DNA of 64,000 nt. Origin: Oculina patagonica (lineage: Eukaryota). A model generated the notes under the pieces. That model was given only the letters and a program-made list of their open reading frames with translations. It ran no database searches and had not been told where the DNA came from. Positions 41,720 through 64,000 of the stretch are shown one piece after another. Each line of letters begins with the position of its first letter. The first letter of the stretch is position 1. Where the stretch lies: positions 434,001 through 498,000 of the forward strand of contig NC_135760.1 of the NCBI RefSeq assembly GCF_052425735.1. The letters run 5' to 3'. The position numbers and the translations under genes are program-made.

Positions 41720-43148
41720 CTAAAACAAGAAATAAAGGCCCCAAACGAAGATGTTAGTAAGACTTGCTTTCAATACATGGAAATCATTTCAGTTTGGTTA
41801 AGTCGAGGAGAACAAGTGTCGTTTGTGGACAATCTTCGTTGAAGAACTATTACGGATATTTATAGTAATGCCATGCGGTCTGCTGGGGGATAAAGCATTA
41901 AAAAAAGACCGTTCTCGGAAAAGTCGTTCCAAAATCTAGCATCTGCGTTCCAAAAATTAAAGTTGAGAGCCAAATTTCATTATTATGGTTGTTTGAAATA
42001 GTAACTCGATATCGGCGCAGCCGTTTTTTTGTAAATCACCGAAATTACCTAAAACTTGGAATACTTCTTACTACATCAATGAAATCCTAGCATAGCTACG
42101 ACTGAACATTTAGCAGAAATAATAAGAAACGCCAGTTGAAGTTTGTCCGCGCAGAAATCACGTGCCCGATTTGCATATAATGTGAAAACCAACATTGCGG
42201 CTGTCGTGAAAACTGACTCCTTATTAAATTCCTCAAAATAAACAACAGCAGCTGCAAGGTGTTTAACTTTTGTAGTGTGGCATGGGTTGCGTTTTTGCTG
42301 TTAACTATAACTCTACATGAACGCTTGCGGTTAGGTAACCATCTTTCAGGTAACGTTAATGTAATGTAGTTCTAGTTCTTCAAACTTTACCAAGCGCGCA
42401 GTGTAGTTTTATCCACAAGAGGAACGCTGACCATGGCGCGAGGGTGTTTCGAGGGATTTTGTTTCACTGCAGTTGTCATTGAAACGAAACGAAGCTTGGC
42501 CAGTATGAAATAAGTGATAACGAGAAATGGGCGATACTTGTAAAATCGAGCGCTCGATGGGGGGGGGGGATGCTTGGAAAAGTTGACGAAAGACTCTCGA
42601 TTCAGATTCTCGCGCTTGGCAAAAAAGTTATGTCTCTAGACCCACGGCGAGTGTCACAATTGACAGTGCTCAGCAAGCTAACTAAATAAAATTAAAAATA
42701 AAGCTTTTCAAAGCAGTCAATGTGCAATTAAAAAACGTGGAATAACGCTTGGAAAAACTAAGGTATACTGACAAAACTTAGTAACAACTAAGTAAGGGAG
42801 AGAAAGATCCCTCTCACGTTGTGGTTTTATAGAAAAGATGATTATATAAAACCCACCAGATTGCAAATAAAAAGCTTTCAGGCAAATAAAAGCTTAAAAG
42901 CTTTTTATTTGCAAAGCATTAGAGCTTTTTTATTCATCAGAAATTCCAAATAGCCTTTCGTTAGCTCCCGTGATTGCGATTTTAGGCCCTAAAACTATAC
43001 TTTCTAATCAACAGAAAAAAAAACCTCTAAACCAGTTTTAAATCCACACGATTAAGAACTGAATAAAGAGAGTGTTGGAGACATCCTCGCGACGAAAACT
43101 GATAACGAAGCAAAGGAACATTAGCTCTTGTCATAAAGCTCCAGACAA

Positions 43149-44075
43149 ATGGCGAACTCAACTAAAGATGGAAACCACACTACTATTCAAGAGTTACTTT
43201 GCCTGACCAGTCTTAATGGCACACATCAAAAGATATTGATTTCAGCACTAAATATTCCTCTCTCCATCACGGCATTTCTAGGGAATGTTCTCATTATTGT
43301 TGCTCTTCGCAAGGTGACGTCCGTTCATCCACCATCAAAAATTCTCTTAGGCTGCCTTGCCAGCACTGATCTGTGTGTGGGTCTCATAACACAGCCCCTC
43401 TTTGTGGCTTATAAACTGTCTCCAGAATACTCGAAACGATGTCATTATTTAAGAATCCTTTCTGACACAATAGGTTTAACATTTTGTGGAGTATCTTTGT
43501 TAACACTGACTGCAATAAGTATTGACAGACTTCTCGCCCTGTTGTTAAGACTAAGATACAGACAGGTAGTAACTTTGATGAGAGTGTGGGCATTTGTTGT
43601 TTTTGTTTGGCTTTTTAGTGCTGCTGTTGCAATCCTACGTTTTTACAACTTTCTTATCCCTTTAACTTTTGCCTTCATAGTACTGTTTCTGTGCATAGTA
43701 ACCTCATGTTTCTGTTACACGAAAATCTTTCTTACACTTCGCCATCATCAAACTCAAGTGCAAGACCATGTTCAGCAAGGACAACAGAATGGAGGAGGAA
43801 TTGCACTGAATATAGCACGATACAGAAAAACAGTGTCTAGTGCACTGTGGATACAGATGACATTACTGGCTTGTTATCTTCCATATGCTATATTCGTAGC
43901 TGCTGTTCTTATACCTGGATTACATACACCATCTCTCAACTTTGCTTGGGCTATAACAATATCTCTGCTTTTGTTAAACTCATCCATTAATCCATTTTTG
44001 TATTGCTGGAAGATGAGAATGGTACGACAAGCAGTGAAGGAGACAATCAGACAGTATTGCTGCTTCTCAAGTTAA
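43149..44075 (+). CDS. Intronless class A (rhodopsin-like) GPCR, copy 1 (melanocortin/adenosine-receptor-like cnidarian orphan family)
   Basis: 308-aa ORF with 7 hydrophobic segments and motifs GN (TM1), LASTD (TM2), SIDRLLAL (TM3), CYLPY (TM6), NSSINPFLY (TM7). Confidence 0.95.
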   Translation: MANSTKDGNHTTIQELLCLTSLNGTHQKILISALNIPLSITAFLGNVLIIVALRKVTSVHPPSKILLGCLASTDLCVGLITQPLFVAYKLSPEYSKRCHYLRILSDTIGLTFCGVSLLTLTAISIDRLLALLLRLRYRQVVTLMRVWAFVVFVWLFSAAVAILRFYNFLIPLTFAFIVLFLCIVTSCFCYTKIFLTLRHHQTQVQDHVQQGQQNGGGIALNIARYRKTVSSALWIQMTLLACYLPYAIFVAAVLIPGLHTPSLNFAWAITISLLLLNSSINPFLYCWKMRMVRQAVKETIRQYCCFSS

Positions 44076-44470
44076 CCGTTTGAGAAGGATGTTATGAGAA
44101 ATCAGTGGAAAGATGCTTCGCTTGATGTATTTGTTGACTTGATGTTATATTACTGATACTTTACATAATAATAAGGCAACATATTTTATTTACATAGCTT
44201 TAGTAAGAGAACTTTTATAACTTCTCAAAGTATTGCAGCTCTATAGGCGTGTTCCCCAGTGTCTCACTGCACTTATTTATCACGACGAGCACTCGTGAAC
44301 GCTTTTTCCAAGATTAAATTGACGAGTTTTGTTGCACTAGTGAATGTTCGTCCATATTCCGTGTGGTTTATTTTAGATTCGGAATTCCTTCGGCAATTGA
44401 ATGTGACTCCGATTGTAAAACGAAATATTTGTTTACCTCGAAAATAACGATTTATAGATATTTATAAATA

Positions 44471-47824: not shown

Positions 47825-48751
47825 ATGGCGAACTCGACTAAAGATGGAAACCACACCACTGTTCAAGAAATACTTTGCCAGACAAGCCTTAACGGAATGC
47901 ATCAGAAGATATTTATTTCAGCACTAAATATTTCTCTATCTGTCACAGCATTTCTAGGGAATGTTCTCATCATTGTTTCTCTTCAAAAGGTGTCGTCCGT
48001 TCATCCGCCATCGAAACTTCTGCTAGGTTGCCTTGCAAGCACTGATCTCTGTGTGGGTCTCATAACACAGCCTCTCTTTGTGGTTTATAAAATGTCTTCT
48101 CAACCCTCGAAACGTTGTCAGCATCTTGGCATTCTTTTTGACACCATAGGTTTAACATTTTGTGGAGTATCTTTGTTAACACTGACTGCAATAAGTGTAG
48201 ACAGACTTCTCGCCCTGTTGTTGGGACTAAGATACAGACAGGTAGTAACTTTGAGGAGAGTGTGGGCCTTTGTGGTTTCTGTTTGGCTTTCTTGTGCTGC
48301 TGTTGCAATCTTACGTTTGTACACCTTTCGCATTTCTTTAACTTACGCCTTCATAGTACTGTTTCTGTGTATAGTAACCTCAACCTATTGTTACATTAAA
48401 ATCTATCTTACACTTCGCCATCACCAAACTCAAGTGCAAGACCATGTTCAGCAAGGACAACAGAATGGAGGAGGAATTGCACTGAATATAGCACGATATA
48501 GAAAAACAGTGTCTAGTGCACTGTGGATACAGATGACATTACTGGCTTGTTATCTTCCATATGCTATATTCGTAGCTGCTGTTCTTATACCTGGATTACA
48601 TACACCATCTCTAAACTTTGCTTGGGCTATAACAATATCTCTGCTTTTGTTAAACTCGTCCATTAATCCATTACTGTATTGCTGGAAAATGAGAATGGTA
48701 CGACAAGCAGTGAAGGAGACAATCAGACAGTTCTGCTGCTTCTCAAGTTAA
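47825..48751 (+). CDS. Intronless class A GPCR, copy 2
   Basis: 308-aa paralogue with the same 7TM motifs (SVDRLLAL, CYLPY, NPLLY). Confidence 0.95.
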   Translation: MANSTKDGNHTTVQEILCQTSLNGMHQKIFISALNISLSVTAFLGNVLIIVSLQKVSSVHPPSKLLLGCLASTDLCVGLITQPLFVVYKMSSQPSKRCQHLGILFDTIGLTFCGVSLLTLTAISVDRLLALLLGLRYRQVVTLRRVWAFVVSVWLSCAAVAILRLYTFRISLTYAFIVLFLCIVTSTYCYIKIYLTLRHHQTQVQDHVQQGQQNGGGIALNIARYRKTVSSALWIQMTLLACYLPYAIFVAAVLIPGLHTPSLNFAWAITISLLLLNSSINPLLYCWKMRMVRQAVKETIRQFCCFSS

Positions 48752-49345
48752 CCGTTTGGTATCCTTAGTTGCATGTTATGAGAAATGGTAAAGATGCTTA
48801 CACTTGATGTAATTTAGTTCGGTCTACTTGATCCTATATTACTTTTACTTGAGTTAATAATACGGCTACATATTTTATTTACATAGCTTTAGTAAGATAA
48901 CTTACTAAAGTATTGCAGCTCTGTAGGCGTGTTCCCCAGTGTCTCACTGCACTTATTTATCACGACGAGCAGTCGTGATCGCTTTTACCAAAATTAAATT
49001 GATGAGTTTCGTTGTTCTAGTGAATGTTCGTCCAATATTCCGTGTGGTTTGTTTTAGAATCGGAATTCCTTCGGCAATTCAATGTGCATTCGATTGTAAA
49101 ACGAAATATTTGTTTACCTCGAACGGCATATATATTTACCCCGGAAATGACGATTTATAGATATTTAGTAAATAAACCCCTTCAGGCGGCTGGTATATTG
49201 GAGGATAATGCCCGAGGCTGAACTGAGATTGTCGAAAAATGAACCACGTGATGCGTTTTGTCCAATGAGCGCGCGCAAAAATTAATGGGTGGGTTATAAA
49301 TATTTCTTGTACTCTGACTTATAAATATTTATTTTGTACTTTAAA

Positions 49346-49405
49346 ATACAATACAATACAATACTTTAATTTGACACTCCCCTTACGGGGCTTTTCAGTG
49401 ACAAT
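49346..49405 (-). mobile_element. LINE/SINE 3' tail fragment with (GTATT)n tail, duplicated at about 52929-52988
   Basis: Minus strand ATTGTCACTGAAAAGCCCCGTAAGGGGAGTGTCAAATTAAAGTATTGTATTGTATTG: stem-loop plus microsatellite tail. Confidence 0.5.
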
Positions 49406-51410
49406 AAATTACAGTAGAAATTACAATTTTACATTTTATCATTTTACATGATATACCATCGTTCTATGGCGAGGAGAGAGAGTGGAATGCAAGTTAATCT
49501 AATTGGGAGCGTAATAGATGAGGGATGACATCTTTCTTTTGTTCTCTTTTTCACTTGTTAGTGAAAAAAAAAAAACTGATATCGAGCAATTTGCATTCAG
49601 AAGACTCTAACCAATGTTGCTGTATTACGGGTGTTGGCTCGTTCAGTTGAGTTGACAGGAAGAATTAAGCACAAGAAAATTAAATGCAGCGCAGTTCAAA
49701 ACAATCTTTGTGTGACAATAATTAGGTTCAGCTGACCTAATGGTGTTTTGCATTAATGCTTTAAAAAATTGAAGTATGCGTTTTCTTAAAACATGCAAAT
49801 TATCAAGGAATTCGAATATGTCTTTCAAATATCAAAAATTTAACTGTCTTTATTTGGTAATAATACGATAAGAAGCGATATTCGTCATTTCACCTAGCTT
49901 TTTCGACGCATGGGTATACATACCCTCTCAAAGTTCAATATTCTTGTAACCAGACATGCTCTCTTTCACAAACAAACTGGAAATTCTTCAGGAGATCAAA
50001 TTTCAAAAACTAGAGACGCCGTTTTCTAGAAGTATTTTTTTTATCCGAGAACATTTTAGCGAAATCGGTCAAGTTTACAACGTCCAGCCCAAGTACAGCA
50101 ATTTTCTTTCCCTGAAAGAGACAAATAGTCGTTCTGGTGATTTTTGCTCAAACAAAGCTTAAAATTTTCCATAAATACGTTATTGACATTGACAGACAAC
50201 CTGCTATCGTAATTCGATAGAGAGGAAGTATCCGCAGCCAATCACGACTCAGAAAAAAGCACAACATCTGCAGCAGAACAAGACGCGGTGCCGGAATAAT
50301 TTGCATAACTTGACAGCACTCGGTAACCTAAGATAATCTTTCGAAACAGTCCATTGTCATAACAGCAAAAGTGGTCACAGTTTGGAGAAATCTCAGACCA
50401 AAAAATCCTTACGCAGGGCTAAATTTATCTGACAGAGAGATTACAACCTCGCTCAGTAGCGGAGAGATAAGAAAGTATTAGAAGCAGACCTAGAACGTGA
50501 CAAACACTACCACCTGCATGGTACTTGTAAGACTATAAACACTTCCTCTTTAAGACAGTTGTGCGACGGCAAAGTCTTCTTCTTTAGTGGTTATAAAAAA
50601 TTGCCTTTCACTGAAAAAGGAAGGTGAGTAAATTTAAAATTAGCTAAATTATTATGAACATAACGTGAATTTATGTGTCAGAAATGTGACCTATAACGCG
50701 GATAGATCACTTGCTATAATCTGAATTCCAAAACAAACAATGAAATTTGCTAGGAATTATGAAAAGAAAGTTATTCATTTCGGTGAATGTAATTTACTGT
50801 TAGAAATTGTAAGCTATAATACTTTGAAAGGAGTGGTTAATTTGAAGATGAGAGTCCGTGTTCCAAGGCAAGACGCTTTACTCACACAAGTGACGCGTTA
50901 TTGTATAAATGGGTTCCAGCGAAATGTCAGGGCGACCTCAAAAATGATTGGGAGCAACAAATTCTCTTTCGCCGACAGATTATACATAATATAATTGTAA
51001 AATCTTCTGTTTGCCGCTGGAATACGACTTTTGCTGCTCCTCAAACCCGGCGCTCGCAGATATTTCATGGAGTTTCCTCTGCCGTAAATGTCAAAGTTAA
51101 TCTATTTTAGACCAAACAAAACTAATTTGCCGTGAGCCTAAGATACGTCTTGACATTTGGTAGTCGCTTGGAAACAAACCATTAAATAATTCCTAGTACC
51201 CGTGTTTGGGAAACTCGACTGAAATGGCCGTTCGTTAGCTTTCATGATTGCGATTTTGTGTAGTAAAAATATACTTTCTAATCAACAGGAAAGACGATAG
51301 AAGCGGTGGAAGAGTATTGAAAACGTCTTTGTAACAGATCCTGGGCCCAGTTGTTCAACGGGTCTTCTTAAACAAATCTGATAAAAGCGTTTTATCTGGC
51401 TTGAAACAAA

Positions 51411-52334
51411 ATGGCGAACGTAACAAAATATGAAAACCTCAATATCGTTCAAGAGTTATTTTGCACGATATCTCTTGGAAAACATCAAAGGATGTTTCTT
51501 TTCATTTTAAGTATTCCTCTCTCCATCACGGCATTTCTAGGGAATGTTCTCATCATTGTTGCTCTTCGCAAGGTGACGTCCGTTCATCCACCATCAAAAA
51601 TTCTGCTAGGTTGCCTTGCGAGCACTGATCTGTGCGTAGGCCTTATTACACAGCCTCTTTACGTTGCTATAGCAATGTCTCCAGAACACTCCAAACGTTG
51701 TCACCACCTTACAATCCTTTTTGAAACCATAGGTTCAACGTTCTGTGCAGTATCTCTGTTAACACTGACTGCAATAAGTGTAGACAGACTTCTCGCCCTG
51801 TTGTTGGGACTAAGATACAGACAGGTAGTAACTTTGAGGAGAGTGTGGGCCTTTGTGGTTTCTGTTTGGCTTTCTTGTGCTGCTGTTGCAATCTTACGTT
51901 TGTACACCTTTCGCATTTCTTTAACTTACGCCTTCATAGTACTGTTTCTGTGTATAGTAACCTCAACCTATTGTTACATTAAAATCTATCTTACACTTCG
52001 CCATCACCAAACTCAAGTGCAAGACCATGTTCAGCAAGGACAACAGAATGGAGGAGGAATTGCACTGAATATAGCACGATATAGAAAAACAGTGTCTAGT
52101 GCACTGTGGATACAGATGACATTACTGGCTTGTTATCTTCCATATGGTATATTCGTAGCTGCAGTTCTTATACCTGGATTACATACACCATCTCTTAACT
52201 TTGCTTGGGCTATAACAATATCTCTGCTTTTGTTAAACTCGTCCATTAATCCATTACTGTATTGCTGGAAAATGAGAATGGTACGACAAGCAGTGAAGGA
52301 GACAATCAGACAGTTTTGCTGCTTCTCAAGTTAA
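51411..52334 (+). CDS. Intronless class A GPCR, copy 3 (chimera: copy-5-type N half, copy-2-type C half)
   Basis: 307-aa ORF. TM1-3 match copy 5 and TM4-7 match copy 2. Confidence 0.95.
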   Translation: MANVTKYENLNIVQELFCTISLGKHQRMFLFILSIPLSITAFLGNVLIIVALRKVTSVHPPSKILLGCLASTDLCVGLITQPLYVAIAMSPEHSKRCHHLTILFETIGSTFCAVSLLTLTAISVDRLLALLLGLRYRQVVTLRRVWAFVVSVWLSCAAVAILRLYTFRISLTYAFIVLFLCIVTSTYCYIKIYLTLRHHQTQVQDHVQQGQQNGGGIALNIARYRKTVSSALWIQMTLLACYLPYGIFVAAVLIPGLHTPSLNFAWAITISLLLLNSSINPLLYCWKMRMVRQAVKETIRQFCCFSS

Positions 52335-54889
52335 CCGTTTGGTGTCCTTAGTTGCATGTTATGAGAAATGGTAAAGATGCTTACACTTGATGTAATTTAG
52401 TTCGGTCTACTTGATCCTATATTACTTTTACTTGAGTTAATAATACGGCTACATATTTTATTTACATAGCTTTAGTAAGATAACTTACTAAAGTATTGCA
52501 GCTCTGTAGGCGTGTTCCCCAGTGTCTCACTGCACTTATTTATCACGACGAGCAGTCGTGATCGCTTTTACCAAAATTAAATTGATGAGTTTCGTTGTAC
52601 TAGTGAATGTTCGTCCAATATTCCGTGTGGTTTGTTTTAGAATCGGAATTCCTTCGGCAATTCAATGTGCATTCGATTGTAAAACGAAATATTTGTTTAC
52701 CTCGAACGGCATATATATTTACCCCGGAAATGACGATTTATAGATATTTAGTAAATAAACCCCTTCAGGCGGCTGGTATATTGGAGGATAATGCCCGAGG
52801 CTGAACTGAGATTGTCGAAAAATGAACCACGTGATGCGTTTTGTCCAATGAGCGCGCGCAAAAATTAATGGGTGGGTTATAAATATTTCTTGTACTCTGA
52901 CTTATAAATATTTATTTTGTACTTTAAAATACAATACAAAACAATACTTTAATTTGACACTCCCCTTACGGGGCTTTTCAGTGACAATAAATTACAGTAG
53001 AAATTACAATTTTACATTTTATCATTTTACATGATATACCATCGTTGTATGGCGAGGAGAGAGAGTGGAATGCAAGTTAATCTAATTGGGAGCGTAATAG
53101 ATGAGGGATGACATCTTTCTTTTGTTCTCTTTTTCACTTGTTAGTGAAAAAAAAAAAACTGATATCGAGCAATTTGCATTCAGAAGACTCTAACCAATGT
53201 TGCTGTATTACGGGTGTTGGCTCGTTCAGTTGAGTTGACAGGAAGAATTAAGCACAAGAAAATTAAATGCAGCGCAGTTCAAAACAATCTTTGTGTGACA
53301 ATAATTAGGTTCAGCTGACCTAATGGTGTTTTGCATTAATGCTTTAAAAAAATTGAAGTATGCGTTTTCTTAAAACATGCAAATTATCAAGGAATTCGAA
53401 TATGTCTCAAAGTTCAATATTCTTGTAACCAGACATGCTCTCTTTCACAAACAAACTGGAAATTCTTCAGGAGATCAAATTTCAAAAACTAGAGACGCCG
53501 TTTTCTAGAAGTATTTTTTTTATCCGAGAACATTTTAGCGAAATCGGTCAAGTTTACAACGTCCAGCCCAAGTACAGCAATTTTCTTTCCCTGAAAGAGA
53601 CAAATAGTCGTTCTGGTGATTTTTGCTCAAACAAAGCTTAAAATTTTCCATAAATACGTTATTGACATTGACAGACAACTTGCTATCGTAATTCGATAGA
53701 GAGGAAGTATCCGCAGCCAATCACGACTCAGAAAAAAGCACAACATCTGCAGCAGAACAAGACGCGGTGCCGGAATAATTTGCATAACTTGACAGCACTC
53801 GGTAACCTAAGATAATCTTTCGAAACAGTCCATTGTCATAACAGCAAAAGTGGTCACAGTTTGGAGAAATCTCAGACCAAAAAATCCTTACGCAGGGCTA
53901 AATTTATCTGACAGAGAGATTACAACCTCGCTCAGTAGCGGAGAGATAAGAAAGTATTAGAAACAGACCTAGAACGTGACAAACACTACCACCTGCATGG
54001 TACTTGTAAGACTATAAACACTTCCTCTTTAAGACAGTTGTGCGACGGCAAAGTCTTCTTCTTTAGTGGTTATAAAAAATTGCCTTTCACTGAAAAAGGA
54101 AGGTGAGTAAATTTAAAATTAGCTAAATTATTATGAACATAACGTGAATTTCTGTGTCAGAAATGTGACCTATAACGCGGATAGATCACTTGCTATAATC
54201 CGAATTCCAAAACAAACAATGAAATTTGCTAGGAATTATGAAAAGAAAGTTATTCATTTCGGTGAATGTAATTTACTGTTAGAAATTGTAAGCTATAATA
54301 CTTTGAAAGGAGTGGTTAATTTGAAGATGAGAGTCCGTGTTCCAAGGCAAGACGCTTTACTCACACAAGTGACGCGTTATTGTATAAATGGGTTCCAGCG
54401 AAATGTCAGGGCGACCTCAAAAATGATTGGGAGCAACAAATTCTCTTTCGCCGACAGATTATACATAATATAATTGTAAAATCTTCTGTTTGCCGCTGGA
54501 ATACGACTTTTGCTGCTCCTCAAACCCGGCGCTCGCAGATATTTCATGGAGTTTCCTCTGCCGTAAATGTCAAAGTTAATCTATTTTAGACCAAACAAAA
54601 CTAATTTGCCGTGAGCCTAAGATACGTCTTGACATTTGGTAGTCGCTTGGAAACAAACCATTAAATAATTCCTAGTACCCGTGTTTGGGAAACTCGACTG
54701 AAATGGCCGTTCGTTAGCTTTCATGATTGCGATTTTGTGTAGTAAAAATATACTTTCTAATCAACAGGAAAGACGATAGAAGCGGTGGAAGAGTATTGAA
54801 AACGTCTTTGTAACAGATCCTGGGCCCAGTTGTTCAACGGGTCTTCTTAAACAAATCTGATAAAAGCGTTTTATCTGGCTTGAAACAAA

Positions 54890-55813
54890 ATGGCGAACGT
54901 AACAAAATATGAAAACCTCAATATCGTTCAAGAGTTATTTTGCACGATATCTCTTGGAAAACATCAAAGGATGTTTCTTTTCATTTTAAGTATTCCTCTC
55001 TCCATCACGGCATTTCTAGGGAATGTTCTCATCATTGTTGCTCTTCGCAAGGTGACGTCCGTTCATCCACCATCAAAAATTCTGCTAGGTTGCCTTGCGA
55101 GCACTGATCTGTGCGTAGGCCTTATTACACAGCCTCTATACGTTGCTGTAGCAATGTCTCCAGAACACTCCAAACGTTGTCACCACCTTACAATCCTTTT
55201 TGAAACCATAGGTTCAACGTTCTGTGCAGTATCTCTGTTAACACTGACTGCAATAAGTGTAGACAGACTTCTCGCCCTGTTGTTGGGACTAAGATACAGA
55301 CAGGTAGTAACTTTGAGGAGAGTGTGGGCCTTTGTGGTTTCTGTTTGGCTTTCTTGTGCTGCTGTTGCAATCTTACGTTTGTACACCTTTCGCATTTCTT
55401 TAACTTACGCCTTCATAGTACTGTTTCTGTGTATAGTAACCTCAACCTATTGTTACATTAAAATCTATCTTACACTTCGCCATCACCAAACTCAAGTGCA
55501 AGACCATGTTCAGCAAGGACAACAGAATGGAGGAGGAATTGCACTGAATATAGCACGATATAGAAAAACAGTGTCTAGTGCACTGTGGATACAGATGACA
55601 TTACTGGCTTGTTATCTTCCATATGGTATATTCGTAGCTGCAGTTCTTATACCTGGATTACATACACCATCTCTTAACTTTGCTTGGGCTATAACAATAT
55701 CTCTGCTTTTGTTAAACTCGTCCATTAATCCATTACTGTATTGCTGGAAAATGAGAATGGTACGACAAGCAGTGAAGGAGACAATCAGACAGTTTTGCTG
55801 CTTCTCAAGTTAA
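54890..55813 (+). CDS. Intronless class A GPCR, copy 4 (near-identical to copy 3)
   Basis: 307-aa ORF; the only visible difference from copy 3 is VAIA versus VAVA. Confidence 0.95.
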   Translation: MANVTKYENLNIVQELFCTISLGKHQRMFLFILSIPLSITAFLGNVLIIVALRKVTSVHPPSKILLGCLASTDLCVGLITQPLYVAVAMSPEHSKRCHHLTILFETIGSTFCAVSLLTLTAISVDRLLALLLGLRYRQVVTLRRVWAFVVSVWLSCAAVAILRLYTFRISLTYAFIVLFLCIVTSTYCYIKIYLTLRHHQTQVQDHVQQGQQNGGGIALNIARYRKTVSSALWIQMTLLACYLPYGIFVAAVLIPGLHTPSLNFAWAITISLLLLNSSINPLLYCWKMRMVRQAVKETIRQFCCFSS

Positions 55814-58027
55814 CCGTTTGGTATCCTTAGTTGCATGTTATGAGAAATGGTAAAGATGCTTACACTTGATGTAATTTAGTTCGGTCTACTTGATCCTATA
55901 TTACTTTTACTTGAGTTAATAATACGGCTACATATTTTATTTACATAGCTTTAGTAAGATAACTTACTAAAGTATTGCAGCTCTGTAGGCGTGTTCCCCA
56001 GTGTCTCACTGCACTTATTTATCACGACGAGCAGTCGTGATCGCTTTTACCAAAATTAAATTGATGAGTTTCGTTGTACTAGTGAATGTTCGTCCAATAT
56101 TCCGTGTGGTTTGTTTTAGGAGCGTAATAGATGAGAGATGACATCTTTCTTTTGTTCTCTTTTTCACTTGTTAGTTGTTAATTTAATGTAGCTGATATCG
56201 AGCAATTTGCATTCAGAAGACTCTAACCAATGTTGCTGTATTACGGGTGTTGGCTCGTTCAGTTGAGTTGACAGGAAGAATTAAGCACAAGAAAATTAAA
56301 TGCAGCGCAGTTCAAAACAATCTTTGTGTGACAATAATTAGGTTCAGCTGACCTAATGGTGTTTTGCATTAATGCTTTAAAAAAATTGAAGTATGCGTTT
56401 TCTTAAAACATGCAAATTATCAAGGAATTCGAATATGTCTTTCAAATATCAAAAATTTAACTGTCTTTATTTGGTAATAATACGATAAGAAGCGATATTC
56501 GTCATTTCACCTAGCTTTTTCGACGCATGGGTATACATACCCTCTCAAAGTTCAATATTCTTGTAACCAGACATGCTCTCTTTCACAAACAAACTGGAAA
56601 TTCTTCAGGAGATCAAATTTCAAAAACTAGAGACGCCGTTTTCTAGAAGTATTTTTTTTATCCGAGAACATTTTAGCGAAATCGGTCAAGTTTACAACGT
56701 CCAGCCCAAGTACAGCAATTTTCTTTCCCTGAAAGAGACAAATAGTCGTTCTGGTGATTTTTGCTCAAACAAAGCTTAAAATTTTCCATAAATACGTTAT
56801 TGACATTGACAGACAACCTGCTATCGTAATTCGATAGAGAGGAAGTATCCGCAGCCAATCACGACTCAGAAAAAAGCACAACATCTGCAGCAGAACAAGA
56901 CGCGGTGCCGGAATAATTTGCATAACTTGACAGCACTCGGTAACCTAAGATAATCTTTCGAAACAGTCCATTGTCATAACAGCAAAAGTGGTCACAGTTT
57001 GGAGAAATCTCAGACCAAAAAATCCTTACGCAGGGCTAAATTTATCTGACAGAGAGATTACAACCTCGCTCAGTAGCGGAGAGATAAGAAAGTATTAGAA
57101 ACAGACCTAGAACGTGACAAACACTACCACCTGCATGGTACTTGTAAGACTATAAACACTTCCTCTTTAAGACAGTTGTGCGACGGCAAAGTCTTCTTCT
57201 TTAGTGGTTATAAAAAATTGCCTTTCACTGAAAAAGGAAGGTGAGTAAATTTAAAATTAGCTAAATTATTATGAACATAACGTGAATTTATGTGTCAGAA
57301 ATGTGACCTATAACGCGGATAGATCACTTGCTATAATCCGAATTCCAAAACAAACAATGAAATTTGCTAGGAATTATGAAAAGAAAGTTATTCATTTCGG
57401 TGAATGTAATTTACTGTTAGAAATTGTAAGCTATAATACTTTGAAAGGAGTGATTAATTTGAAGATGAGAGCCCGTGTTCCAAGGCAAGACGCTTTACTC
57501 ACACAAGTGACGCGTTATTGTATAAATGGGTTCCAGCGAAATGTCAGGGCGACCTCAAAAATGATTGGGAGCAACAAATTCTCTTTCGCCGACAGATTAT
57601 ACATAATATAATTGTAAAATCTTCTGTTTGCCGCTGGAATACGACTTTTGCTGCTCCTCAAACCCGGCGCTCGCAGATATTTCATGGAGTTTCCTCTGCC
57701 GTAAATGTCAAAGTTAATCTATTTTAGACCAAACAAAACTAATTTGCCGTGAGCCTAAGATACGTCTTGACATTTGGTAGTCGCTTGGAAACAAACCATT
57801 AAATAATTCCTAGTACCCGTGTTTGGGAAACTCGACTGAAATGGCCGTTCGTTAGCTTTCATGATTGCGATTTTGTGTAGTAAAAATATACTTTCTAATC
57901 AACAGGAAAGACGATAGAAGCGGTGGAAGAGTATTGAAAACGTCTTTGTAACAGATCCTGGGCCCAGTTGTTCAACGGGTCTTCTTAAACAAATCTGATA
58001 AAAGCGTTTTATCTGGCTTGAAACAAA

Positions 58028-58936
58028 ATGGCGAACGTAACAAAATATGAAAACCTCAATATCGTTCAAGAGTTATTTTGCACGATATCTCTTGGAAAAC
58101 ATCAAAGGATGTTTCTTTTCATTTTAAGTATTCCTCTCTCCATCACGGCATTTCTAGGGAATGTTCTCATCATTGTTGCTCTTCGCAAGGTGACGTCCGT
58201 TCATCCACCATCAAAAATTCTGCTAGGTTGCCTTGCGAGCACTGATCTGTGCGTAGGCCTTATTACACAGCCTCTTTACGTTGCTGTAGCAATGTCTCCA
58301 GAACACTCCAAACGTTGTCACCACCTTACAATCCTTTTTGAAACCATAGGTTCAACGTTCTGTGCAGTATCTCTGTTAACACTGACTGCAATAAGTGTAG
58401 ACAGACTTCTCGCCCTGTTGTTGGGGCTAAGATACAGACAGGTAGTAACTTTGAAGAGAGTGTGGCTTGTTATTGTCTCCATTTGGCTTTTCAGTGCTTC
58501 TGTTGCAACTATGGTGTTTTTTAACTTTCTTATTGCTTTAAGCATCGCCTGCATAGTACTATTTCTGTGTATAGTAACCTCATCTTTCTGTTATATTAAA
58601 ATCTATCTCGCGCTTCGCCATCACCAAACTCAAGTGCAAGACCATGTTCACCAAGAACAACAGAATGGAGGAGGAATGTCACTAAATATAGCACGATACA
58701 GAAAGACAGTGTCTAGTGCACTGTGGATACAGATGACATTGCTGGCTTGTTATCTTCCATATGGTATCGTCACATCTACTGTTGTTATCACTGGATTACA
58801 AACACCATTTCCTACTCACGTAACAATATCTCTAGTTTTGTTAAACTCCACCCTGAATCCATTTCTGTATTGTTGGAAGATGAAGGAAGTAAGACAAGCA
58901 GTGAAGGAGACAATCAAGTGCTGGTTATCATGTTAA
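58028..58936 (+). CDS. Intronless class A GPCR, copy 5
   Basis: 302-aa ORF. N half as copies 3/4; distinct TM4-7, shortened ECL3 and a different C-terminus (KCWLSC). Confidence 0.95.
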   Translation: MANVTKYENLNIVQELFCTISLGKHQRMFLFILSIPLSITAFLGNVLIIVALRKVTSVHPPSKILLGCLASTDLCVGLITQPLYVAVAMSPEHSKRCHHLTILFETIGSTFCAVSLLTLTAISVDRLLALLLGLRYRQVVTLKRVWLVIVSIWLFSASVATMVFFNFLIALSIACIVLFLCIVTSSFCYIKIYLALRHHQTQVQDHVHQEQQNGGGMSLNIARYRKTVSSALWIQMTLLACYLPYGIVTSTVVITGLQTPFPTHVTISLVLLNSTLNPFLYCWKMKEVRQAVKETIKCWLSC

Positions 58937-59811
58937 CTGTTTGGTATATTTGACAGCAAGAATCACAAGTTGAAAGCAAGCACAATAAATACAACTTGTG
59001 AAGCACACCAAAAAAAGTACCAACACGAACAACGCTTCTTGGTCTAAACACGAAGAAGGTGACAGTTTAATCTGGCCAATGAAAATGGAGACTTCCTCTG
59101 GATGGGTTTGTTAGGATTTGAAATGCTTAATTTTGTTATTAACCTATTTCCAAGAAGGAAAGCGGTTATAAAAGGCGGAGAACCACAGCACTAAGCTAGG
59201 ACTATAACACACCAGCCACAAAATCTTAGAAGTGTTTTCAGCTATTACTATTACTTTGAGTAAATAATTGATCTTAATTGTAAAGTTTGTTGTTTTTTAA
59301 TGAAAAAAAAAAAAAATAGAAAGAAAAGAGACAATAAAATAAACAGCAGCTGTGAAAGGTTCTAACTTCTCCCCACGAAATAATTCATTATTTTTTTTGT
59401 TGGTAGCTACGACTCGACTCGACACTACAACACATCTTTCAGCTAAGTTTTCTTAACACAACTTTTATAACTTGTCAAATTGAAGCATTGAAGTTCTATG
59501 AGCGTGTTTATCACAGCCACGGCCGGCGTTCACTAAGCGGTAAGCTTTGGTGTACTTGTGAATGTTCAAGCAATCTTCTAATTCGTTTATTGACCCTAGG
59601 AGACAATGATCGATGGAGCGCTAGTAAAATTATTTCAGATTTCACCGAAAAGTGTGTATGAAAGACGTGTGTATTTGCTTGATCGAATCTAAACGGAATC
59701 GTGATGTGAACATCGGGAAAAAAGAAATCAGAACCGTTTTTCATCACCGAGTTTTAGCCGTCCGAACACATGAATTTTCACTTCCGGTTGCGTCCAAAAA
59801 CCGCGCAACGT

Positions 59812-59891
59812 CTGACTCGACCCAGTCGTCTTTTGAGTCCGTCTTAACTGAACCCGGAGGGAATCATAAGAGACGACTGGGGACGAGTCAG
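59812..59891. mobile_element. Mini-MITE
   Basis: CTGACTCGACCCAGTCGTCT...AGACGACTGGGGACGAGTCAG inverted ends. Confidence 0.65.
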
Positions 59892-62628
59892 GCGTAAAGT
59901 GGGGATATAGGGCTGGTGGAGGTGTGACGTAGGAACAAGAATACTTGAATACGACTACTAAGAATACGAATAAAACGCCGTGGTGAAAAAACGATTTTGA
60001 TTCTTTATTCGATGTTCGTATTAGGTTCCCACGTTGGTTTCAAAATTTCTGTTTCTCTTTAACATTTCATCAATTCCCAAGAATAGTCGGACAAGTATGT
60101 TAATAAGTAGGGAGAATTTGTATTTTGTCATGTTTTACGTCATATAAATTTAACATATGTGATACCAGAATCTCCATACATATAACGAGCTTGCTTATAT
60201 TCATGTCATGTGTTATGGACAAAAAAAAAACACCCAAAACCAATAATTTTTCAATCATCCCAGCGTTTTAAATAAAGAAAGCATCTGTTGAGGTGTTTCT
60301 GAAATTTTTTCTTTGTTCGGTCGGCACTAACGTTGTGTGTTGCCAACAAAACGTCACTTAAAACAGTAAATTCCACGGCGTTGAATAAAATTAATTCACA
60401 TCGAAACAGGAACACACTCAAAAATTAAAACAAGGCAGCTGCGAGGTGTTAATTTTTGTCCGTGTGGAATAATAATTTGAATTTATGTTGCTAGCAACGA
60501 GTGGACACTACAAGAGGAGCTTTGGATTAGGTCAATATTTCTCAGGTAATTTCAATGTAGTTAATCACTTTTAAAAGCAAGCCTCATTTATTCAAGCGTT
60601 TTTTAAAAACCTTTTAAGGCTTTTTATATATCCACAAAAGAAAAACCACTTTGACTTTTGCAACACACATCCAAATAGAACACTGGCATGTCTCTGATGA
60701 TACTGAAACAAAACCAAACGAAACGACTGAACGAAACGGTTCGCCAGCTTTCAATAAGTAATGGCGGAAAACGCGCAAGACTTGTAAAATGAGGTGCTCC
60801 ATTTCTCGGTGATTGAAAGGGTTGACGCAAACGTTCGATTCTCATTAGCAAATAAAGTTTCGGCGAAGAAAATAGGTCTCCAGTAACGCGACGAATTACA
60901 ATGGATATTTTTCCCGACTGGTATATCTTGACAGCGTTCAGCATGCTAAAAAATAATAATTTAAGATAGCGTCTCTAAAAGCAGTCTATGTTATAGCTAT
61001 AAAAAGTTTAAAATCACACTTTTGGACAAGCTGAGGTCAGTAAAATGACAAAAAAGCGAGAGGAGTTCGCCCCCCTTTCGTGTAAAGGGGAAATAATTAT
61101 GTAGGTATTTATGTATGTAAATAAAAGAGGGGATTAGAAACTGATCTGGAAAACAAAAATCAAGCGGTTTGCTAAAATAAAAAGCCAAAAGTTTAAATAA
61201 TCATGAATTTACTAATTCTGGCAAACATAGCCATCTTTAATATATTCTTTGAGATTCGCAAACTAGAAATTCAAACAACGCCCTCTTTAGCAAAACTTTG
61301 TTACTAGGTTTGCTCCAGACAACGTTTATCCTACACTACTAATGTGTTGGGGTTTTTTTACACTAAAGCAACCCCAAGATAGCCCAGCAGACCAATTTAG
61401 AATTAACGATTGCTCGCGATAAACAGGTGCCACTCTCAAGAAATTAACGGTCTAACTAATTGTGGTTATTGTCACTGGGTGAATAACTGAAATATAATAT
61501 ATGGTATCCATGGGATCGCTGCTGGTGCCGCCGTAACCATTGTTATTTTTTCACTTAATTTGTCGTAACAAATGCATTTGAAATTCTCATAAAAACCAAA
61601 AGTGAAACAGCTTATCTGTTGAACAAGCTATATAGTTATAGTTATAGTCTCATGTAGAAGAAAAATAAAAGAGAGGATAAGAAACTGATCTAGATAGAAA
61701 CAGATCTAGAAAACAAAAATCCAGCTATTTGCCAAAATAAGAAGCTTAAAGCTTGAATAATCATGAATTTAGTATTTCTACAAAAAAAAAAACAAAGCCA
61801 CCGTTCATATCTTCTCTGAAACTTGCGAACAGGAAATTCAAACAAAGTCCTCTGGCCAGTCACAAAGTACGACAATACAGTGAACCAATCAAAACTCAAA
61901 GTAAATACAGGAAGTCGGCAAGAAGCGCGGGAAAACGTGTGCGAAGGAGCCACGATTGGTTTTAGGTTTACTTCTGATTGGAACAAATTCTGAAATTCTA
62001 CCTCGATTCTACAGTGAAAACCGCTGTGTGTTCATAACACCGTCGGCTGAACGACTGCACAATGATAAAAACAACACCATCACAGGATTTGAGACATCAT
62101 ATTAAAAAATAATAATATAAAATTAAGCCCTTTTTACGATTAATTCGACAAGTGGCTGAGTTAGAAGGGAAAATTTACTACAAATAAAACACTTTTCGCT
62201 GCAGAGACAAAAGATTACAATGATAGAATGGACGGCAAAATTATAAGAGCATATTTATTTATTGCAATTTTCTGGGACAATTATGTCCAAGGGGGAAAGG
62301 TGAAAATATGAAAAGTAATAGAACAGACCAATTTTCAGCCGTGTTTCGTTGCTAGATGCTAATTACCATGGGTAATTAGTGGATTCACCACAGCTGCTCC
62401 GGCGCGTGCTTGGAAATATTATTCAATTACGATTTTCTCAACTGAAACCCCTTTATCATTTTCTAATCACCAGGAAAAAAGACATCTGAACCAGCCTTAA
62501 GACCAGCATGATGAAACAAGTATAGAAGATTGTTGGAAACGTCTTTCCTGACAGCCCTGCCCTTTTAAAAGGAAACTGATAAAAAAGTAAAGGAACACTG
62601 AGTCTTGTCATAACAAGCTTAAAACGAA

Positions 62629-63552
62629 ATGGCGAACTCAACAAAAGATGAAAACAACATTACAGACCAAGAGTTATTTTGCACGACAGGTCTTGGAACA
62701 CATCAGAAGACATTTATTTCAGCATTTAATATTCCTCTCTCCATCACCGCATTTCTAGGGAATGTACTCATCATTGCTGCTCTTCAAAAAGTGTCGTCCC
62801 TTCATCCACCATCAAAAATTCTGCTTGGTTGCCTTGCCAGCACTGATCTCTGTGTGGGTCTCATAACACAACCTCTTTACGTTTCTATGAAAATGTCTCC
62901 AGAACACTCCAAATATTGCCTCTATCTTAAAATCCTTTTTGAGACTATAGGTTCCATGTTTTGTGCAGTATCTTTGTTAACAATGACTGCAATAAGTATT
63001 GACAGACTTCTCGCCCTGAGGTTGCGACTTAGATACAGACAGGTAGTAACTTTGATGAGAGTGCGGCTTGTTGTTGTTTCCTTTTGGCTCTTTAGTGCTT
63101 CTGTTGCAGCTATAGTGTTTTACAACTTTCTCATTGCTTCAAGCATCGCCTGCATTATAGTGTTATTGTGCATAGTAACCTCAACCTTCTGTTATACGAA
63201 AATCTATCTTACACTTCGCCATCACCAAACTCAAGTGCAAGACCATGTTCACCAAGGACAACAGAATGGAGGAGGAATTGCACTGAATATAGCACGATAC
63301 AGAAAGACAGTGTCTAGTGCACTGTGGATACAGATGACATTACTGGCTTGTTATCTTCCATATGCTATATTCGTTGGAATAATTGCAGTCACCGGATTAA
63401 CTAAATCATCTCTCGACATCGCTTGGGCTATAACAATATCTCTGCTTTTGTTAAACTCGTCCATTAATCCATTACTGTATTGTTGGAAGATGAGGGAAGT
63501 GCGACAAGCAGCGAAGGAGACAATCAGACAGTTTTGCTGCTTTTCAAATTAA
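62629..63552 (+). CDS. Intronless class A GPCR, copy 6
   Basis: 307-aa paralogue with the same motifs. Confidence 0.95.
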   Translation: MANSTKDENNITDQELFCTTGLGTHQKTFISAFNIPLSITAFLGNVLIIAALQKVSSLHPPSKILLGCLASTDLCVGLITQPLYVSMKMSPEHSKYCLYLKILFETIGSMFCAVSLLTMTAISIDRLLALRLRLRYRQVVTLMRVRLVVVSFWLFSASVAAIVFYNFLIASSIACIIVLLCIVTSTFCYTKIYLTLRHHQTQVQDHVHQGQQNGGGIALNIARYRKTVSSALWIQMTLLACYLPYAIFVGIIAVTGLTKSSLDIAWAITISLLLLNSSINPLLYCWKMREVRQAAKETIRQFCCFSN

Positions 63553-64000
63553 CTATCTGGTGTACTTAACAATAAGTATCCCAAGTTAAAAGCAAGCCAC
63601 AAAAATGCAATTTGTAAAGAAAAACAACAAAACAGCAACAGCACGAACACAAACAACCCCCTTGATATCGATGCTGTACATGAAAGGAGGGAAGCAGTTT
63701 AATCTGGTCAATGAAAATACGGACTTTCTCTGGGCAAGATTTTTAGGAGTAAGTTCTTCCATGGCAATGCAAAGTGAAGCAGACAGGTGACGGAAACAGA
63801 GATCATTCACTACAGGATGTGTAGTAGCCTAGACCTACCCCGACCTTTCATAGTAACGTGACATCAAAGAGACCCAATGGGTATCTCGCGATGGAAAGTC
63901 ATGTATTCAAGGGACAAAGCACAAACCGATGGCAGCGACTGGTACGAAATTGTGTGAAGTTAATTTGCCATTGTAAGACAAGCACACATATTAAACGTTG

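Follow-up and report, generated by a model that had tools for sequence, protein, structure and literature searches.

Two chimeric receptor genes in a tandem class-A GPCR array of the coral Oculina patagonica, very probably formed by unequal crossing-over between neighbouring paralogues

A tandem array of intronless class-A GPCR genes on chromosome CM126637.1 of O. patagonica contains two hybrid genes, c3 and c4, lying between the two genes from which they are composed, c2 (gene A) and c5 (gene B). Both hybrids switch from B-type to A-type sequence within a 52-bp interval, a block that ends at this same tract is present three times in succession, and A and B are the parents. On the basis of this arrangement, we consider it very probable that the hybrids arose by unequal crossover (NAHR) between the neighbouring paralogous genes A and B. 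The window, that is, the whole stretch of 64,000 nucleotides that was analyzed, includes six members of the array, all on the + strand. The array runs on beyond the window end, where c6 is followed by c7, which is truncated, and c8, so that there are at least eight copies; further family members were looked for upstream of c1 in the window and none was found. An earlier note on this DNA had described all frames as intact, and a check of the six ORFs bears this out, at the same coordinates:

43149-44075, + strand: c1, ORF of 308 aa; the first member of the array and the closest paralogue of gene A, pairing with c2 in both half-trees.
47825-48751, + strand: c2, parental gene A, ORF of 308 aa; class-A GPCR (Pfam 7tm_1, 99.4 bits).
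51411-52334, + strand: c3, hybrid gene B/A, 307 aa; identified by site pattern, maximum chi-square, AU tests and AF2 topology.
54890-55813, + strand: c4, second hybrid gene B/A, ORF of 307 aa; identified by site pattern.
58028-58936, + strand: c5, parental gene B, ORF of 302 aa; single-copy in its 3' part, which starts at column 402.
62629-63552, + strand: c6, ORF of 307 aa; the next member of the array, outside the hybrid-forming event.

The mosaic structure of the hybrids is evident in a six-way alignment of the coding sequences. Up to column 349 (window position 51756), c3 and c4 have the c5 state at all 78 ungapped informative sites and are c2-like at none, and from column 402 (position 51809) onwards they have the c2 state at 88 of 90 such sites. 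These counts agree with the earlier claim that the two copies combine the N-terminus to TM3 of c5 with TM4-TM7 of c2; more exactly, in c3 gene B contributes the sequence from the N-terminus to TM3 and gene A that from ICL2 to the C-terminus. The two c5-like exceptions inside the A-type part of both hybrids, at columns 740 and 789, need either a small later conversion or an allelic difference in the donor. The maximum chi-square for the switch is 160.2, a value equalled by none of 10000 shuffles. Separate trees for the two halves, which the earlier note had proposed as a check, are in conflict: the 5' part joins c3, c4 and c5 with support of 100/99, the 3' part joins c2, c3 and c4 with support of 98/98, and AU tests reject the congruent alternatives (p = 9.9e-7 and 3.0e-35). 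The 5' part of c2, to column 349, is single-copy, and in the 3' part c2 shares 99.2% identity with c3 and c4. The hybrids themselves differ by two nucleotides (columns 252 and 262) and one amino acid.

The switch had been placed in an identical tract at 51757-51808, and exactly these coordinates were recovered. Two of its copies mark the junctions:

51757-51808, + strand: junction interval in c3; c2, c3, c4 and c5 are identical over these 52 bp, which encode LLTLTAISVDRLLALLLG.
55236-55287, + strand: the same junction tract in c4, an exact sequence match.

The tract begins at 48174 in c2, 51757 in c3, 55236 in c4 and 58374 in c5, and the encoded peptide, LLTLTAISVDRLLALLLG, covers residues 116-133, from the cytoplasmic half of TM3 through the DRL (DRY-type) motif into the beginning of ICL2. 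The reading frame is kept across the junction, which lies at homologous positions of both parents. Genes A and B are approximately 80% identical (187 of 927 columns differ), and the 52-nt tract is the longest run of identity between them, the runner-up being 38 nt; it was probably chosen for exchange because it is the longest perfect match. Since c3 and c4 share one junction by descent, they attest to a single event between A and B and not to two uses of the joint.

The repetition extends well beyond the coding sequences. Three blocks, whose boundaries lie exactly at the tract, follow one another head to tail and are collinear, with spacers of 2.2-2.7 kb:

48174-51756, + strand: repeat block P1, 3583 bp; the tract, the A 3' half, the full-length spacer and the B 5' half, ending with the first 346 nt of c3.
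51757-55235, + strand: repeat block P2, 3479 bp; lacks 105 bp between 53404 and 53405, a loss private to this block.
55236-58373, + strand: repeat block P3, 3138 bp; lacks 449 bp between 56118 and 56119, a loss private to this block, and has a small complex replacement at 56176-56191.

The A-B spacer was thus duplicated together with the gene halves, the unit being bounded by the breakpoints in A and B, and because this tract-to-tract block is present three times, each hybrid has a copy of the spacer on both sides, as unequal crossover predicts. The segment of 449 bp that is missing from P3 is ancestral, since parts of it are found downstream of c1 and in a short unplaced contig, L001. In a MAFFT alignment of the three blocks, P1 differs by 14 substitutions from P2 and by 11 from P3; overall, the blocks differ from each other by 7-14 substitutions over approximately 3.0-3.5 kb (0.2-0.4%, or an identity of 99.6-99.8%), and the private changes number 9-11 in P1 and 4 each in P2 and P3. 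As the hybrid copies differ by only 0.2-0.4%, their intact frames are uninformative on selection.

Under the proposed origin, the locus would have started as A (c2), one spacer and B (c5). Gene B of one chromatid would have paired with gene A of the other, and the exchange would have been resolved in the shared 52-bp tract, with a gain product consisting of A, spacer, B/A, spacer and B. The B/A gene would have received its promoter, N-terminus and TM1-TM3 from B and its ICL2, TM4-TM7, tail and 3' flank from A. The increase to three blocks and two hybrids would then have come from another unequal exchange, this time between near-identical blocks, or alternatively from template switching during replication within the same episode; the blocks have, in our judgement, too few private changes to tell two successive steps from one triplication. 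We infer that the exchange was a meiotic crossover rather than BIR-type repair, that the two steps occurred in this order and that the age of the event corresponds to roughly 0.2% divergence per lineage. The earlier note had already ascribed the order A - B/A - B/A - B to unequal crossing-over, an explanation that the triplicated block of A 3' half, spacer and B 5' half strengthens.

Hybrid number (two) and locus structure were read from one assembly, and the hybrid protein is on record, in the protein collection, from one contig only. If the true locus were A-B or A-B/A-B, the extra blocks would be haplotype variants or mis-stacked copies of collapsed or expanded repeats, an artefact that would be in keeping with a divergence between blocks (identity of 99.6-99.8%) below typical coral heterozygosity and with the existence of the unplaced contig L001, whose c1-like gene indicates that some sequence of the region or family is unplaced in the assembly. 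Such an artefact is nonetheless quite improbable, because three block versions with private substitutions and two different private deletions are more than two alleles can account for, so that one haplotype must carry two or more of the blocks and with them a hybrid gene. By the same reasoning, one diploid cannot supply all three distinct spacer versions as alleles, from which it follows that at least one B/A junction is real. There are also no N runs or contig joins across 40-64 kb, the sole gap of the window being at 21732-22231, and the whole repeat, at 10.2 kb, is of a length that ordinary long reads can span. In the metagenome collection, a hybrid-specific pattern (in the window, confined to c3 and c4) and a B-type control were both without a match, which indicates that the collection contains no Oculina DNA of this locus and leaves the blank without weight for or against the junction.

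Gene conversion without crossover would require four old genes, with c5 sequence written over the 5' halves of the middle two, or c2 sequence over their 3' halves. Conversion and older exchange have evidently been at work in the array, as c1 is B-type at 13 of 13 sites in columns 109-225, the 3' parts have been homogenised in c1/c2 and in c6/c7, and silent sites have been homogenised within the array in the TM3/DRL and ICL3-TM6 blocks. However, the near-identity around the hybrids spans the entire spacers of 2.2-2.7 kb on either side of each of them, with a repeat unit bounded exactly by the tract, whereas the spacers of the older neighbours (c1-c2 and c5-c6) are merely 75-88% alike where they can be aligned. 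A conversion patch would have recipient sequence on both sides and would leave the number of genes and the spacers as they were, a pattern that c3 and c4 do not display. As the spacers were triplicated along with the gene halves, we reject conversion as the main mechanism and hold it to be very improbable that it produced the hybrids. An earlier conversion between A and B, considered as the source of the identity of the tract itself, was dropped as unneeded; the tract states of c2 look ancestral, since genes of other corals have them too, and c1 is the changed one.

The direction of the event has also to be considered, as unrooted data by themselves provide none. With the polarity reversed, B/A would be the ancestral gene that was then amplified, and c2 and c5 would have diverged by acquiring a foreign 5' half and a foreign 3' half, respectively; no near-identical donor would be required if these two halves are simply old. 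What makes this course of events scarcely credible is the affinity of both halves of c5 to one and the same foreign gene, P0009 (locus L002) of another coral: P0009 joins c5 in the 3' part with support of 98/96 and c3, c4 and c5 in the N-part with support of 84/85, and L002 has upstream spacer homology with the O. patagonica locus. As another coral also has the B-type combination, B is parental and not derived. In addition, c2 joins c1 in both half-trees, and any tandem amplification of a block that runs from tract to tract must have begun with one block, in the arrangement A-spacer-B, the starting point of the unequal crossover that we favor.

Haemoglobin anti-Lepore, which involves the delta and beta globin genes, is a known product of this type: the gain product of an unequal crossover keeps both parents with the hybrid between them (A - B/A - B), and the hybrid takes its promoter from the downstream gene and its 3' end from the upstream one. 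The coral locus shares with anti-Lepore both this order and the combination of a downstream-gene promoter with an upstream-gene 3' end, and differs from it in the gene family and in the second round, which led to two hybrid copies; the product seen in the coral is the gain haplotype, not the reciprocal Lepore-type A/B deletion. A parallel within the receptor superfamily is provided by the L and M cone opsins (OPN1LW/OPN1MW), where NAHR between tandem paralogues alters copy number and gives in-frame hybrid receptors (PMC9271157). The coral array is, like that of the cone opsins, a tandem class-A GPCR array in which a hybrid consists of the 5' part of one gene and the 3' part of another. The opsin units, however, are 37-38 kb long, with several exons and an identity above 98% over their whole length, and exchange takes place mostly in introns, whereas the coral genes are intronless and their parents approximately 80% identical, so that the exchange was confined to an island of identity of 52 bp in coding sequence. 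A functional effect, spectral tuning, is known for the opsins.

In corals, the rhodopsin-like GPCR is the commonest domain among tandemly amplified gene families (PMC10236652), and recurrent NAHR has been proposed as a driver of tandem expansions in Acropora (PMC12314368). In the worked example for Acropora, exchange between transposon copies that flank a gene leads to the duplication of whole genes, paralogous copies are also named as possible substrates, and the authors present the NAHR model as a hypothesis still to be tested (PMC12314368). The Oculina locus differs from that example in that the exchange was gene-to-gene and inside the ORF, with a new chimeric coding sequence as its outcome, and it presents the coral tandem-expansion process with parents, product and breakpoint all readable. 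The hybrid pair is a very clean example of a well-known route of gene family growth, by a textbook mechanism that will not surprise the specialist. A stretch of 11 kb contains the two parents, the product in duplicate and a breakpoint narrowed to 52 bp, and the event is young (0.2-0.4% divergence), with nothing overwritten yet. The locus provides evidence, taken directly from its structure, that gene-to-gene NAHR gives rise to new coding sequences in GPCR arrays of corals.

The further claim of the earlier note, that the TM3-ICL2 tract acts as a recombination joint, does not follow from these data, as the junction of c3 and c4 represents one event and the boundaries of older exchanges in the array, located by triplet scans, lie elsewhere, in a TM1-TM2 tract (c1) and in the ICL3 block (c1/c2 and c6/c7). 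Breaks at the same tract were also looked for elsewhere in the family, as that note had suggested. A change-point scan of 598 protein pairs from 108 sampled family members detected 27 significant pairs, which we read as about 8 separate mosaic events; their breakpoints scatter (residues ~25, 60, 89-113 and 247-259), and the 3 events of these ~8 with breakpoints in residues 89-142 are too few for a hotspot. The best foreign case is the pair P0032 and P0038, identical over 1.2 kb upstream and the first 305 nt and diverged from there on, with a switch ~40 nt upstream of the tract; the two were assembled from short metagenome reads, each in a different sample, and chimeric contigs are a real risk in such assemblies. 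Within the array, silent-site identity is 0.93-1.0 in the TM3/DRL and ICL3-TM6 blocks and 0.55-0.68 in TM2, which is equally conserved at the protein level. A broader possibility, though an unlikely one, is that the blocks of the cytoplasmic face (the bottom of TM3 with DRL, and ICL3-TM6) act as recurrent joints between which extracellular-facing helix modules are routinely reshuffled. If this is true, coral GPCR arrays hold a built-in combinatorial diversification rather than the results of an occasional accident, and c3 and c4 are its freshest product.

The assignment of the genes to the class-A (rhodopsin-like) GPCRs is based on profile, fold and the DRL and NPxxY motifs. Each of c1-c6 matches Pfam PF00001 (7tm_1), with 99.4 bits for c2, 98.5 for c3 and 95.5 for c5 against a cut-off of 30.5, and D125 and R126 of the DRL motif as well as N280, P281 and Y284 of NPLLY are invariant across 46 family members. 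The AF2 model of c3 (pLDDT 71, pTM 0.68) has seven TM helices and helix 8, at residues 24-54, 60-89, 95-139, 142-165, 167-210, 217-253, 260-287 and 289-302, and its Foldseek TM-scores against the A2A, MC4R, MC5R and beta-1 receptors are 0.70-0.84. A family search returned more than 7900 matches, of which the best 120, at 52-88% identity, are all from corals or metagenomes, and the family is a coral-lineage expansion. Variable columns peak in the N-terminus, ECL1 with the top of TM3, TM4-ECL2-TM5 and TM6-ECL3-TM7, and dN/dS reaches 0.5-0.9 in variable regions of the extracellular side vs 0.17 in the cytoplasmic blocks. The array and this extracellular-side variation would fit a candidate chemosensory family, without being specific to one. 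For such an orphan cnidarian family, A, B and B/A, distinguished solely by the halves of the helix bundle that they combine, form a natural set with which to ask whether TM1-3 or TM4-7 sets ligand specificity. The best sequence matches among solved structures are TAAR9, MC4R, MC5R and the A3/A2A receptors (E about 1e-13). The orthology with melanocortin, trace amine (TAAR) or adenosine receptors that automatic annotation names imply is not supported, as identities are 18-23% and the matches fall on several receptors for amines, peptides and nucleosides that are unrelated to each other; no ligand should be assigned from the "-like" names. The coral receptors share the class-A fold with those named in these annotations and, like the melanocortin receptors, have a very short ECL2.

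The window lies on Oculina patagonica chromosome CM126637.1 (assembly GCA_052425735.1), at about 434001-498000 according to its overlap with locus L004, and carries six intact, intronless open reading frames (ORFs) of a G-protein-coupled receptor (GPCR) family, each encoding 302–308 amino acids on the + strand:

43149-44075, + strand, ORF of c1
47825-48751, + strand, ORF of c2
51411-52334, + strand, ORF of c3
54890-55813, + strand, ORF of c4
58028-58936, + strand, ORF of c5
62629-63552, + strand, ORF of c6

A tblastn search of the whole window revealed no further receptor copies or fragments besides these six. The array runs on past the window end with two more members, contained in the fetched locus L004:

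L004:10001-10858, about 3 kb past the window end, c7, 285 aa, without helix 8 and C-tail
L004:15860-16783, c8, which with its flanks forms a 3.7-kb block 94% identical to the c6 block (window 60038-63762)

The stop codon of c7 directly follows NPFLYC, and this gene is likely a decaying copy. All three array copies tested match Pfam 7tm_1 (95–99 bits), and the AlphaFold model of c3 (pLDDT 71) displays seven helices plus helix 8 and superposes on the A2A, MC4R, MC5R and beta-1 receptors with TM-scores of 0.70–0.84. At the sequence level the match to any solved receptor is only about 20% identity, so RefSeq's "melanocortin receptor 5-like" and "trace amine-associated receptor 9-like" are to be read as placeholder names. 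In corals this family is very large (more than 7900 matches). An opposite-strand public gene model for a cathepsin-L-like protein (549 aa, Inhibitor_I29 and Peptidase_C1) spans L004:1-20858 (-), a range that covers window 57012-64000 and beyond; either c5–c8 lie inside intron(s) of this gene or the model wrongly joins distant exons. The sole assembly gap of the window, 500 Ns at 21732-22231, is distant from the receptor array.

Two of the array genes, c3 and c4, are mosaics of c2 (hereafter A) and c5 (B). In a six-way alignment of the coding sequences (CDS), both have the c5 state at all informative positions through column 349 (window 51756) and then switch to the c2 state, which persists from column 402 (51809) up to the stop codon except at columns 740 and 789; the 52 nt in between (51757-51808, the tract) are identical in c2, c3, c4 and c5. 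Ungapped informative sites are 78 c5-like and 0 c2-like to the left of the break and 88 c2-like and two c5-like to its right, with a maximum chi-square of 160.2 that was equalled in 0 of 10000 shuffles. The tract codes for residues 116–133, LLTLTAISVDRLLALLLG, which comprise the lower half of TM3, the DRY motif in its DRL form and the beginning of ICL2, so that each hybrid (B/A) joins the N-terminus and TM1–TM3 of c5 to ICL2 and TM4–TM7 of c2. The earlier note had arrived at the same switch interval and the same hybrid make-up, and the site pattern and tract topology bear out both. The separate trees of the halves that it had suggested as a check disagree with high support: in maximum likelihood trees built for the 5' and 3' parts, with four outgroup genes included, (c3,c4,c5) is recovered at 100/99 in the former and (c2,c3,c4) at 98/98, within a 100/100 clade with c1, in the latter, and AU tests rejected the congruent groupings (p = 9.9e-7 and 3.0e-35). 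The c5 states within the A part, at columns 740 and 789, one of which changes PYAI to PYGI, may stem from a later conversion of short extent, or the donor chromosome may have carried a different allele there.

The comparison was extended from tract to tract to include the spacers, whereas the genes only had been considered before. A whole block, which runs from the tract through the 3' half of A and the intergenic spacer to the 5' half of B, is present in three head-to-tail copies that are collinear end to end in the tract-to-tract alignment:

48174-51756, block P1
51757-55235, block P2
55236-58373, block P3

The blocks differ by 14 (P1 vs P2), 11 (P1 vs P3) and 7 (P2 vs P3) substitutions, one 1-bp indel, private deletions of 105 bp in P2 (53404/53405) and 449 bp in P3 (56118/56119), and a small complex replacement in P3 (56176-56191). 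The spacers of older neighbors (c1–c2, c5–c6) are alignable in part only, at 75–88% identity. The repeat is flanked by single-copy sequence, the 5' 349 nt of c2 on one side and the 3' part of c5 on the other, which is the layout expected for A5'-(block)x3-B3'. Repetition of a block that extends from a point in A to the homologous point in B, with the A–B spacer inside, is the hallmark that an unequal crossover of A with B leaves behind; this was the mechanism originally proposed, and it is upheld by a threefold block bounded at the tract. Gene conversion, the other mechanism considered, was rejected, as it would alter neither copy number nor spacers, whereas here block and spacer are repeated together.

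Both hybrids are read from one assembly, and an error in copy number or stacking could in principle have produced them; we regard this as improbable, and a false B/A junction as much less likely still. The receptor-array region is free of N runs, and P1, P2 and P3 all differ in sequence: every one of them has SNPs of its own, and P2 and P3 in addition have different private deletions. If the block were single-copy, one diploid individual could contribute no more than two versions of it; unless the sample was chimeric, one haplotype must accordingly carry two or more blocks, and with them at least one B/A gene. Searches for independent data found neither the hybrid junction nor a B-type control sequence in the metagenome collection, a blank that carries no weight either way, and among protein records the hybrid protein comes from a single contig.

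The genes c3 and c4 have a common junction and a CDS difference of 2 nt; one A x B exchange plus one further block duplication is enough for both hybrids, and the second step could have taken place anywhere within 3.5 kb of near-identical sequence. Scattered along the block are 9–11 private changes in P1, 4 in P2, and 3 plus one complex event in P3, with P2 and P3 slightly closer to each other than to P1; these counts look too small to exclude a near-simultaneous origin of the three blocks, e.g. by one replication-based triplication. Divergence of about 0.1–0.2% per lineage, under typical coral allelic diversity, implies a very recent event, for which intact frames are the default expectation and carry no information on selection. 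At 56176-56191 in P3, a poly-A run present in P1 and P2 has given way to a 16-nt string similar to the last part of the 449-bp segment, whose deletion site lies 57 nt upstream; this suggests one complex deletion/repair event, not two mutations.

Tandem amplification of a tract-to-tract block implies a one-block ancestor, A-spacer-B. A Tara metagenome contig of another coral, L002, encodes the family protein P0009; the 3' part of this gene falls with c5 in the DNA tree (98/96), and the protein tree places the N part of P0009 with c3, c4 and c5 (84/85); the upstream region in L002 has 78% homology to the spacer immediately upstream of c3, c4 and c5, and c2 groups with c1 in both half-trees. Taken with the one-block ancestor, these groupings indicate that A and B are the old combinations and B/A the new one.

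As to the position of the junction, 187 of 927 columns distinguish c2 from c5, and the tract is their longest identity run (the next are 38, 35 and 30 nt); together with the following 28 nt it makes 81 nt with one mismatch. The simplest reading is that the exchange was resolved at the longest homology. Between c2 and c5, dS is 0.155 in TM3-bottom/ICL2, 0.92 in the adjacent ECL1/TM3-top and 0.53 in TM4-ECL2-TM5.

The idea that the tract serves as a recombination joint stood in part: recombination is common among array members and conserved blocks are plausible exchange points, but older exchanges are bounded elsewhere, and a dedicated TM3/DRL hotspot would be a stronger claim than the data carry. 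In c1, all 13 sites of columns 109–225 (window 43257-43373; TM1-ICL1-TM2) that are informative against c2 agree with the B type (c3/c4/c5), the remainder of the gene being c2-like, and the B-like gene in L002 lacks the states that c1 shares with B at columns 161, 162 and 169; this stretch looks like an older exchange with the B lineage within Oculina. Moreover, divergence between c1 and c2 is 10–15% as far as about column 570, after which the two are almost identical up to roughly column 810 (c1 ~43720-43960 vs c2 ~48400-48635), and c6/c8 and c7 are near-identical from about column 510. With 0–4 differences per 60 nt in the 3' parts and 10–18% difference in the 5' parts, c1/c2 and c6/c7 represent older half-homogenisations with a boundary in the TM5/ICL3 block, not the TM3 tract. 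A separate observation on c1 concerns L001, an unplaced 3269-bp contig of the same assembly (JBPAPT010001646.1), which carries a c1-like gene with an ORF shortened to 292 aa, is 93% identical to window 42365-44470 over 2.1 kb and has c2-type bases at CDS columns 431, 444, 455, 467 and 469; the contig represents either a second, divergent haplotype of c1 or an unplaced paralogue.

A change-point scan weighted by site variability, covering 108 family proteins from several corals, yielded 27 significant pairs, in our own reading some eight distinct events, whose breakpoints fall near residues 25, 60, 89–113 (three events, that of c3/c4 included) and 247–259. The clearest foreign case is P0038 vs P0032 (L006:1-2159 vs L007:1615-3773), in which identity extends over 1.2 kb upstream and 305 nt into the ORF, followed by about 12% divergence. 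Both contigs were assembled from short metagenome reads of separate samples from other corals, a setting in which paralogue chimeras are a known risk, and the pair represents either another half-swap in TM3 or a chimeric contig. As to whether other clusters break at the same place, the P0038/P0032 switch point lies outside the tract, about 40 nt upstream.

Silent sites were compared as the share of same-amino-acid codons that are identical over pair comparisons among five distinct array lineages; the figures are descriptive, the pairs being non-independent and the sample small. Silent codon identity is 93–95% in residues 115–129 (TM3/DRL) and 94–100% in residues 198–247 (ICL3-TM6), and only 55–68% in TM2 (residues 63–83), where conservation at the protein level is equally high. 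When the comparison is with genes of other clusters or species, the figure for the TM3 block is at background (0.69–0.73; overall 0.68), and that for the ICL3 block still reaches 0.80–0.92. The TM3/DRL block thus looks locally homogenised in the array, and the ICL3 block is conserved more widely at the DNA level. In the latter (codons 198–247, e.g. window 52002-52151 in c3, HHQTQVQDH...ARYRKTVSSALWIQMTLLACYLPY), silent-site identity amounts to DNA- or RNA-level conservation beyond protein constraint.

The anti-Lepore type is the gain product of an unequal crossover, and the c2–c5 locus is of this kind. Among GPCRs, its nearest parallel is the L/M cone-opsin array, in which non-allelic homologous recombination (NAHR) changes copy number and yields hybrid receptors (PMC9271157). 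Unlike the cone opsins, the coral parents A and B are only about 80% identical and intronless, so that the exchange needed a short identity island within the ORF and directly swapped halves of the helix bundle. Rhodopsin-like GPCRs are the most frequent family in tandem amplification in corals (PMC10236652), and NAHR has been proposed as the engine of coral tandem expansions, a proposal that its authors describe as still to be tested (PMC12314368); the c2–c5 locus provides a concrete, breakpoint-resolved case of NAHR in coral GPCR expansion.

Array members vary mostly in the N-terminus, ECL1/TM3 top, TM4-ECL2-TM5 and TM6-ECL3-TM7 top, and dN/dS in these regions is 0.5–0.9 in some pairs vs about 0.17 in cytoplasmic blocks. 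This pattern fits a ligand-facing side that has diversified and a G-protein-facing side that has stayed constant, and a putative role in sensing or in symbiosis/immunity would be plausible. The upstream 2.2–2.7 kb are essentially common to c3, c4 and c5; with the same spacer in front of them, the hybrids, if expressed, should follow the regulation of B.
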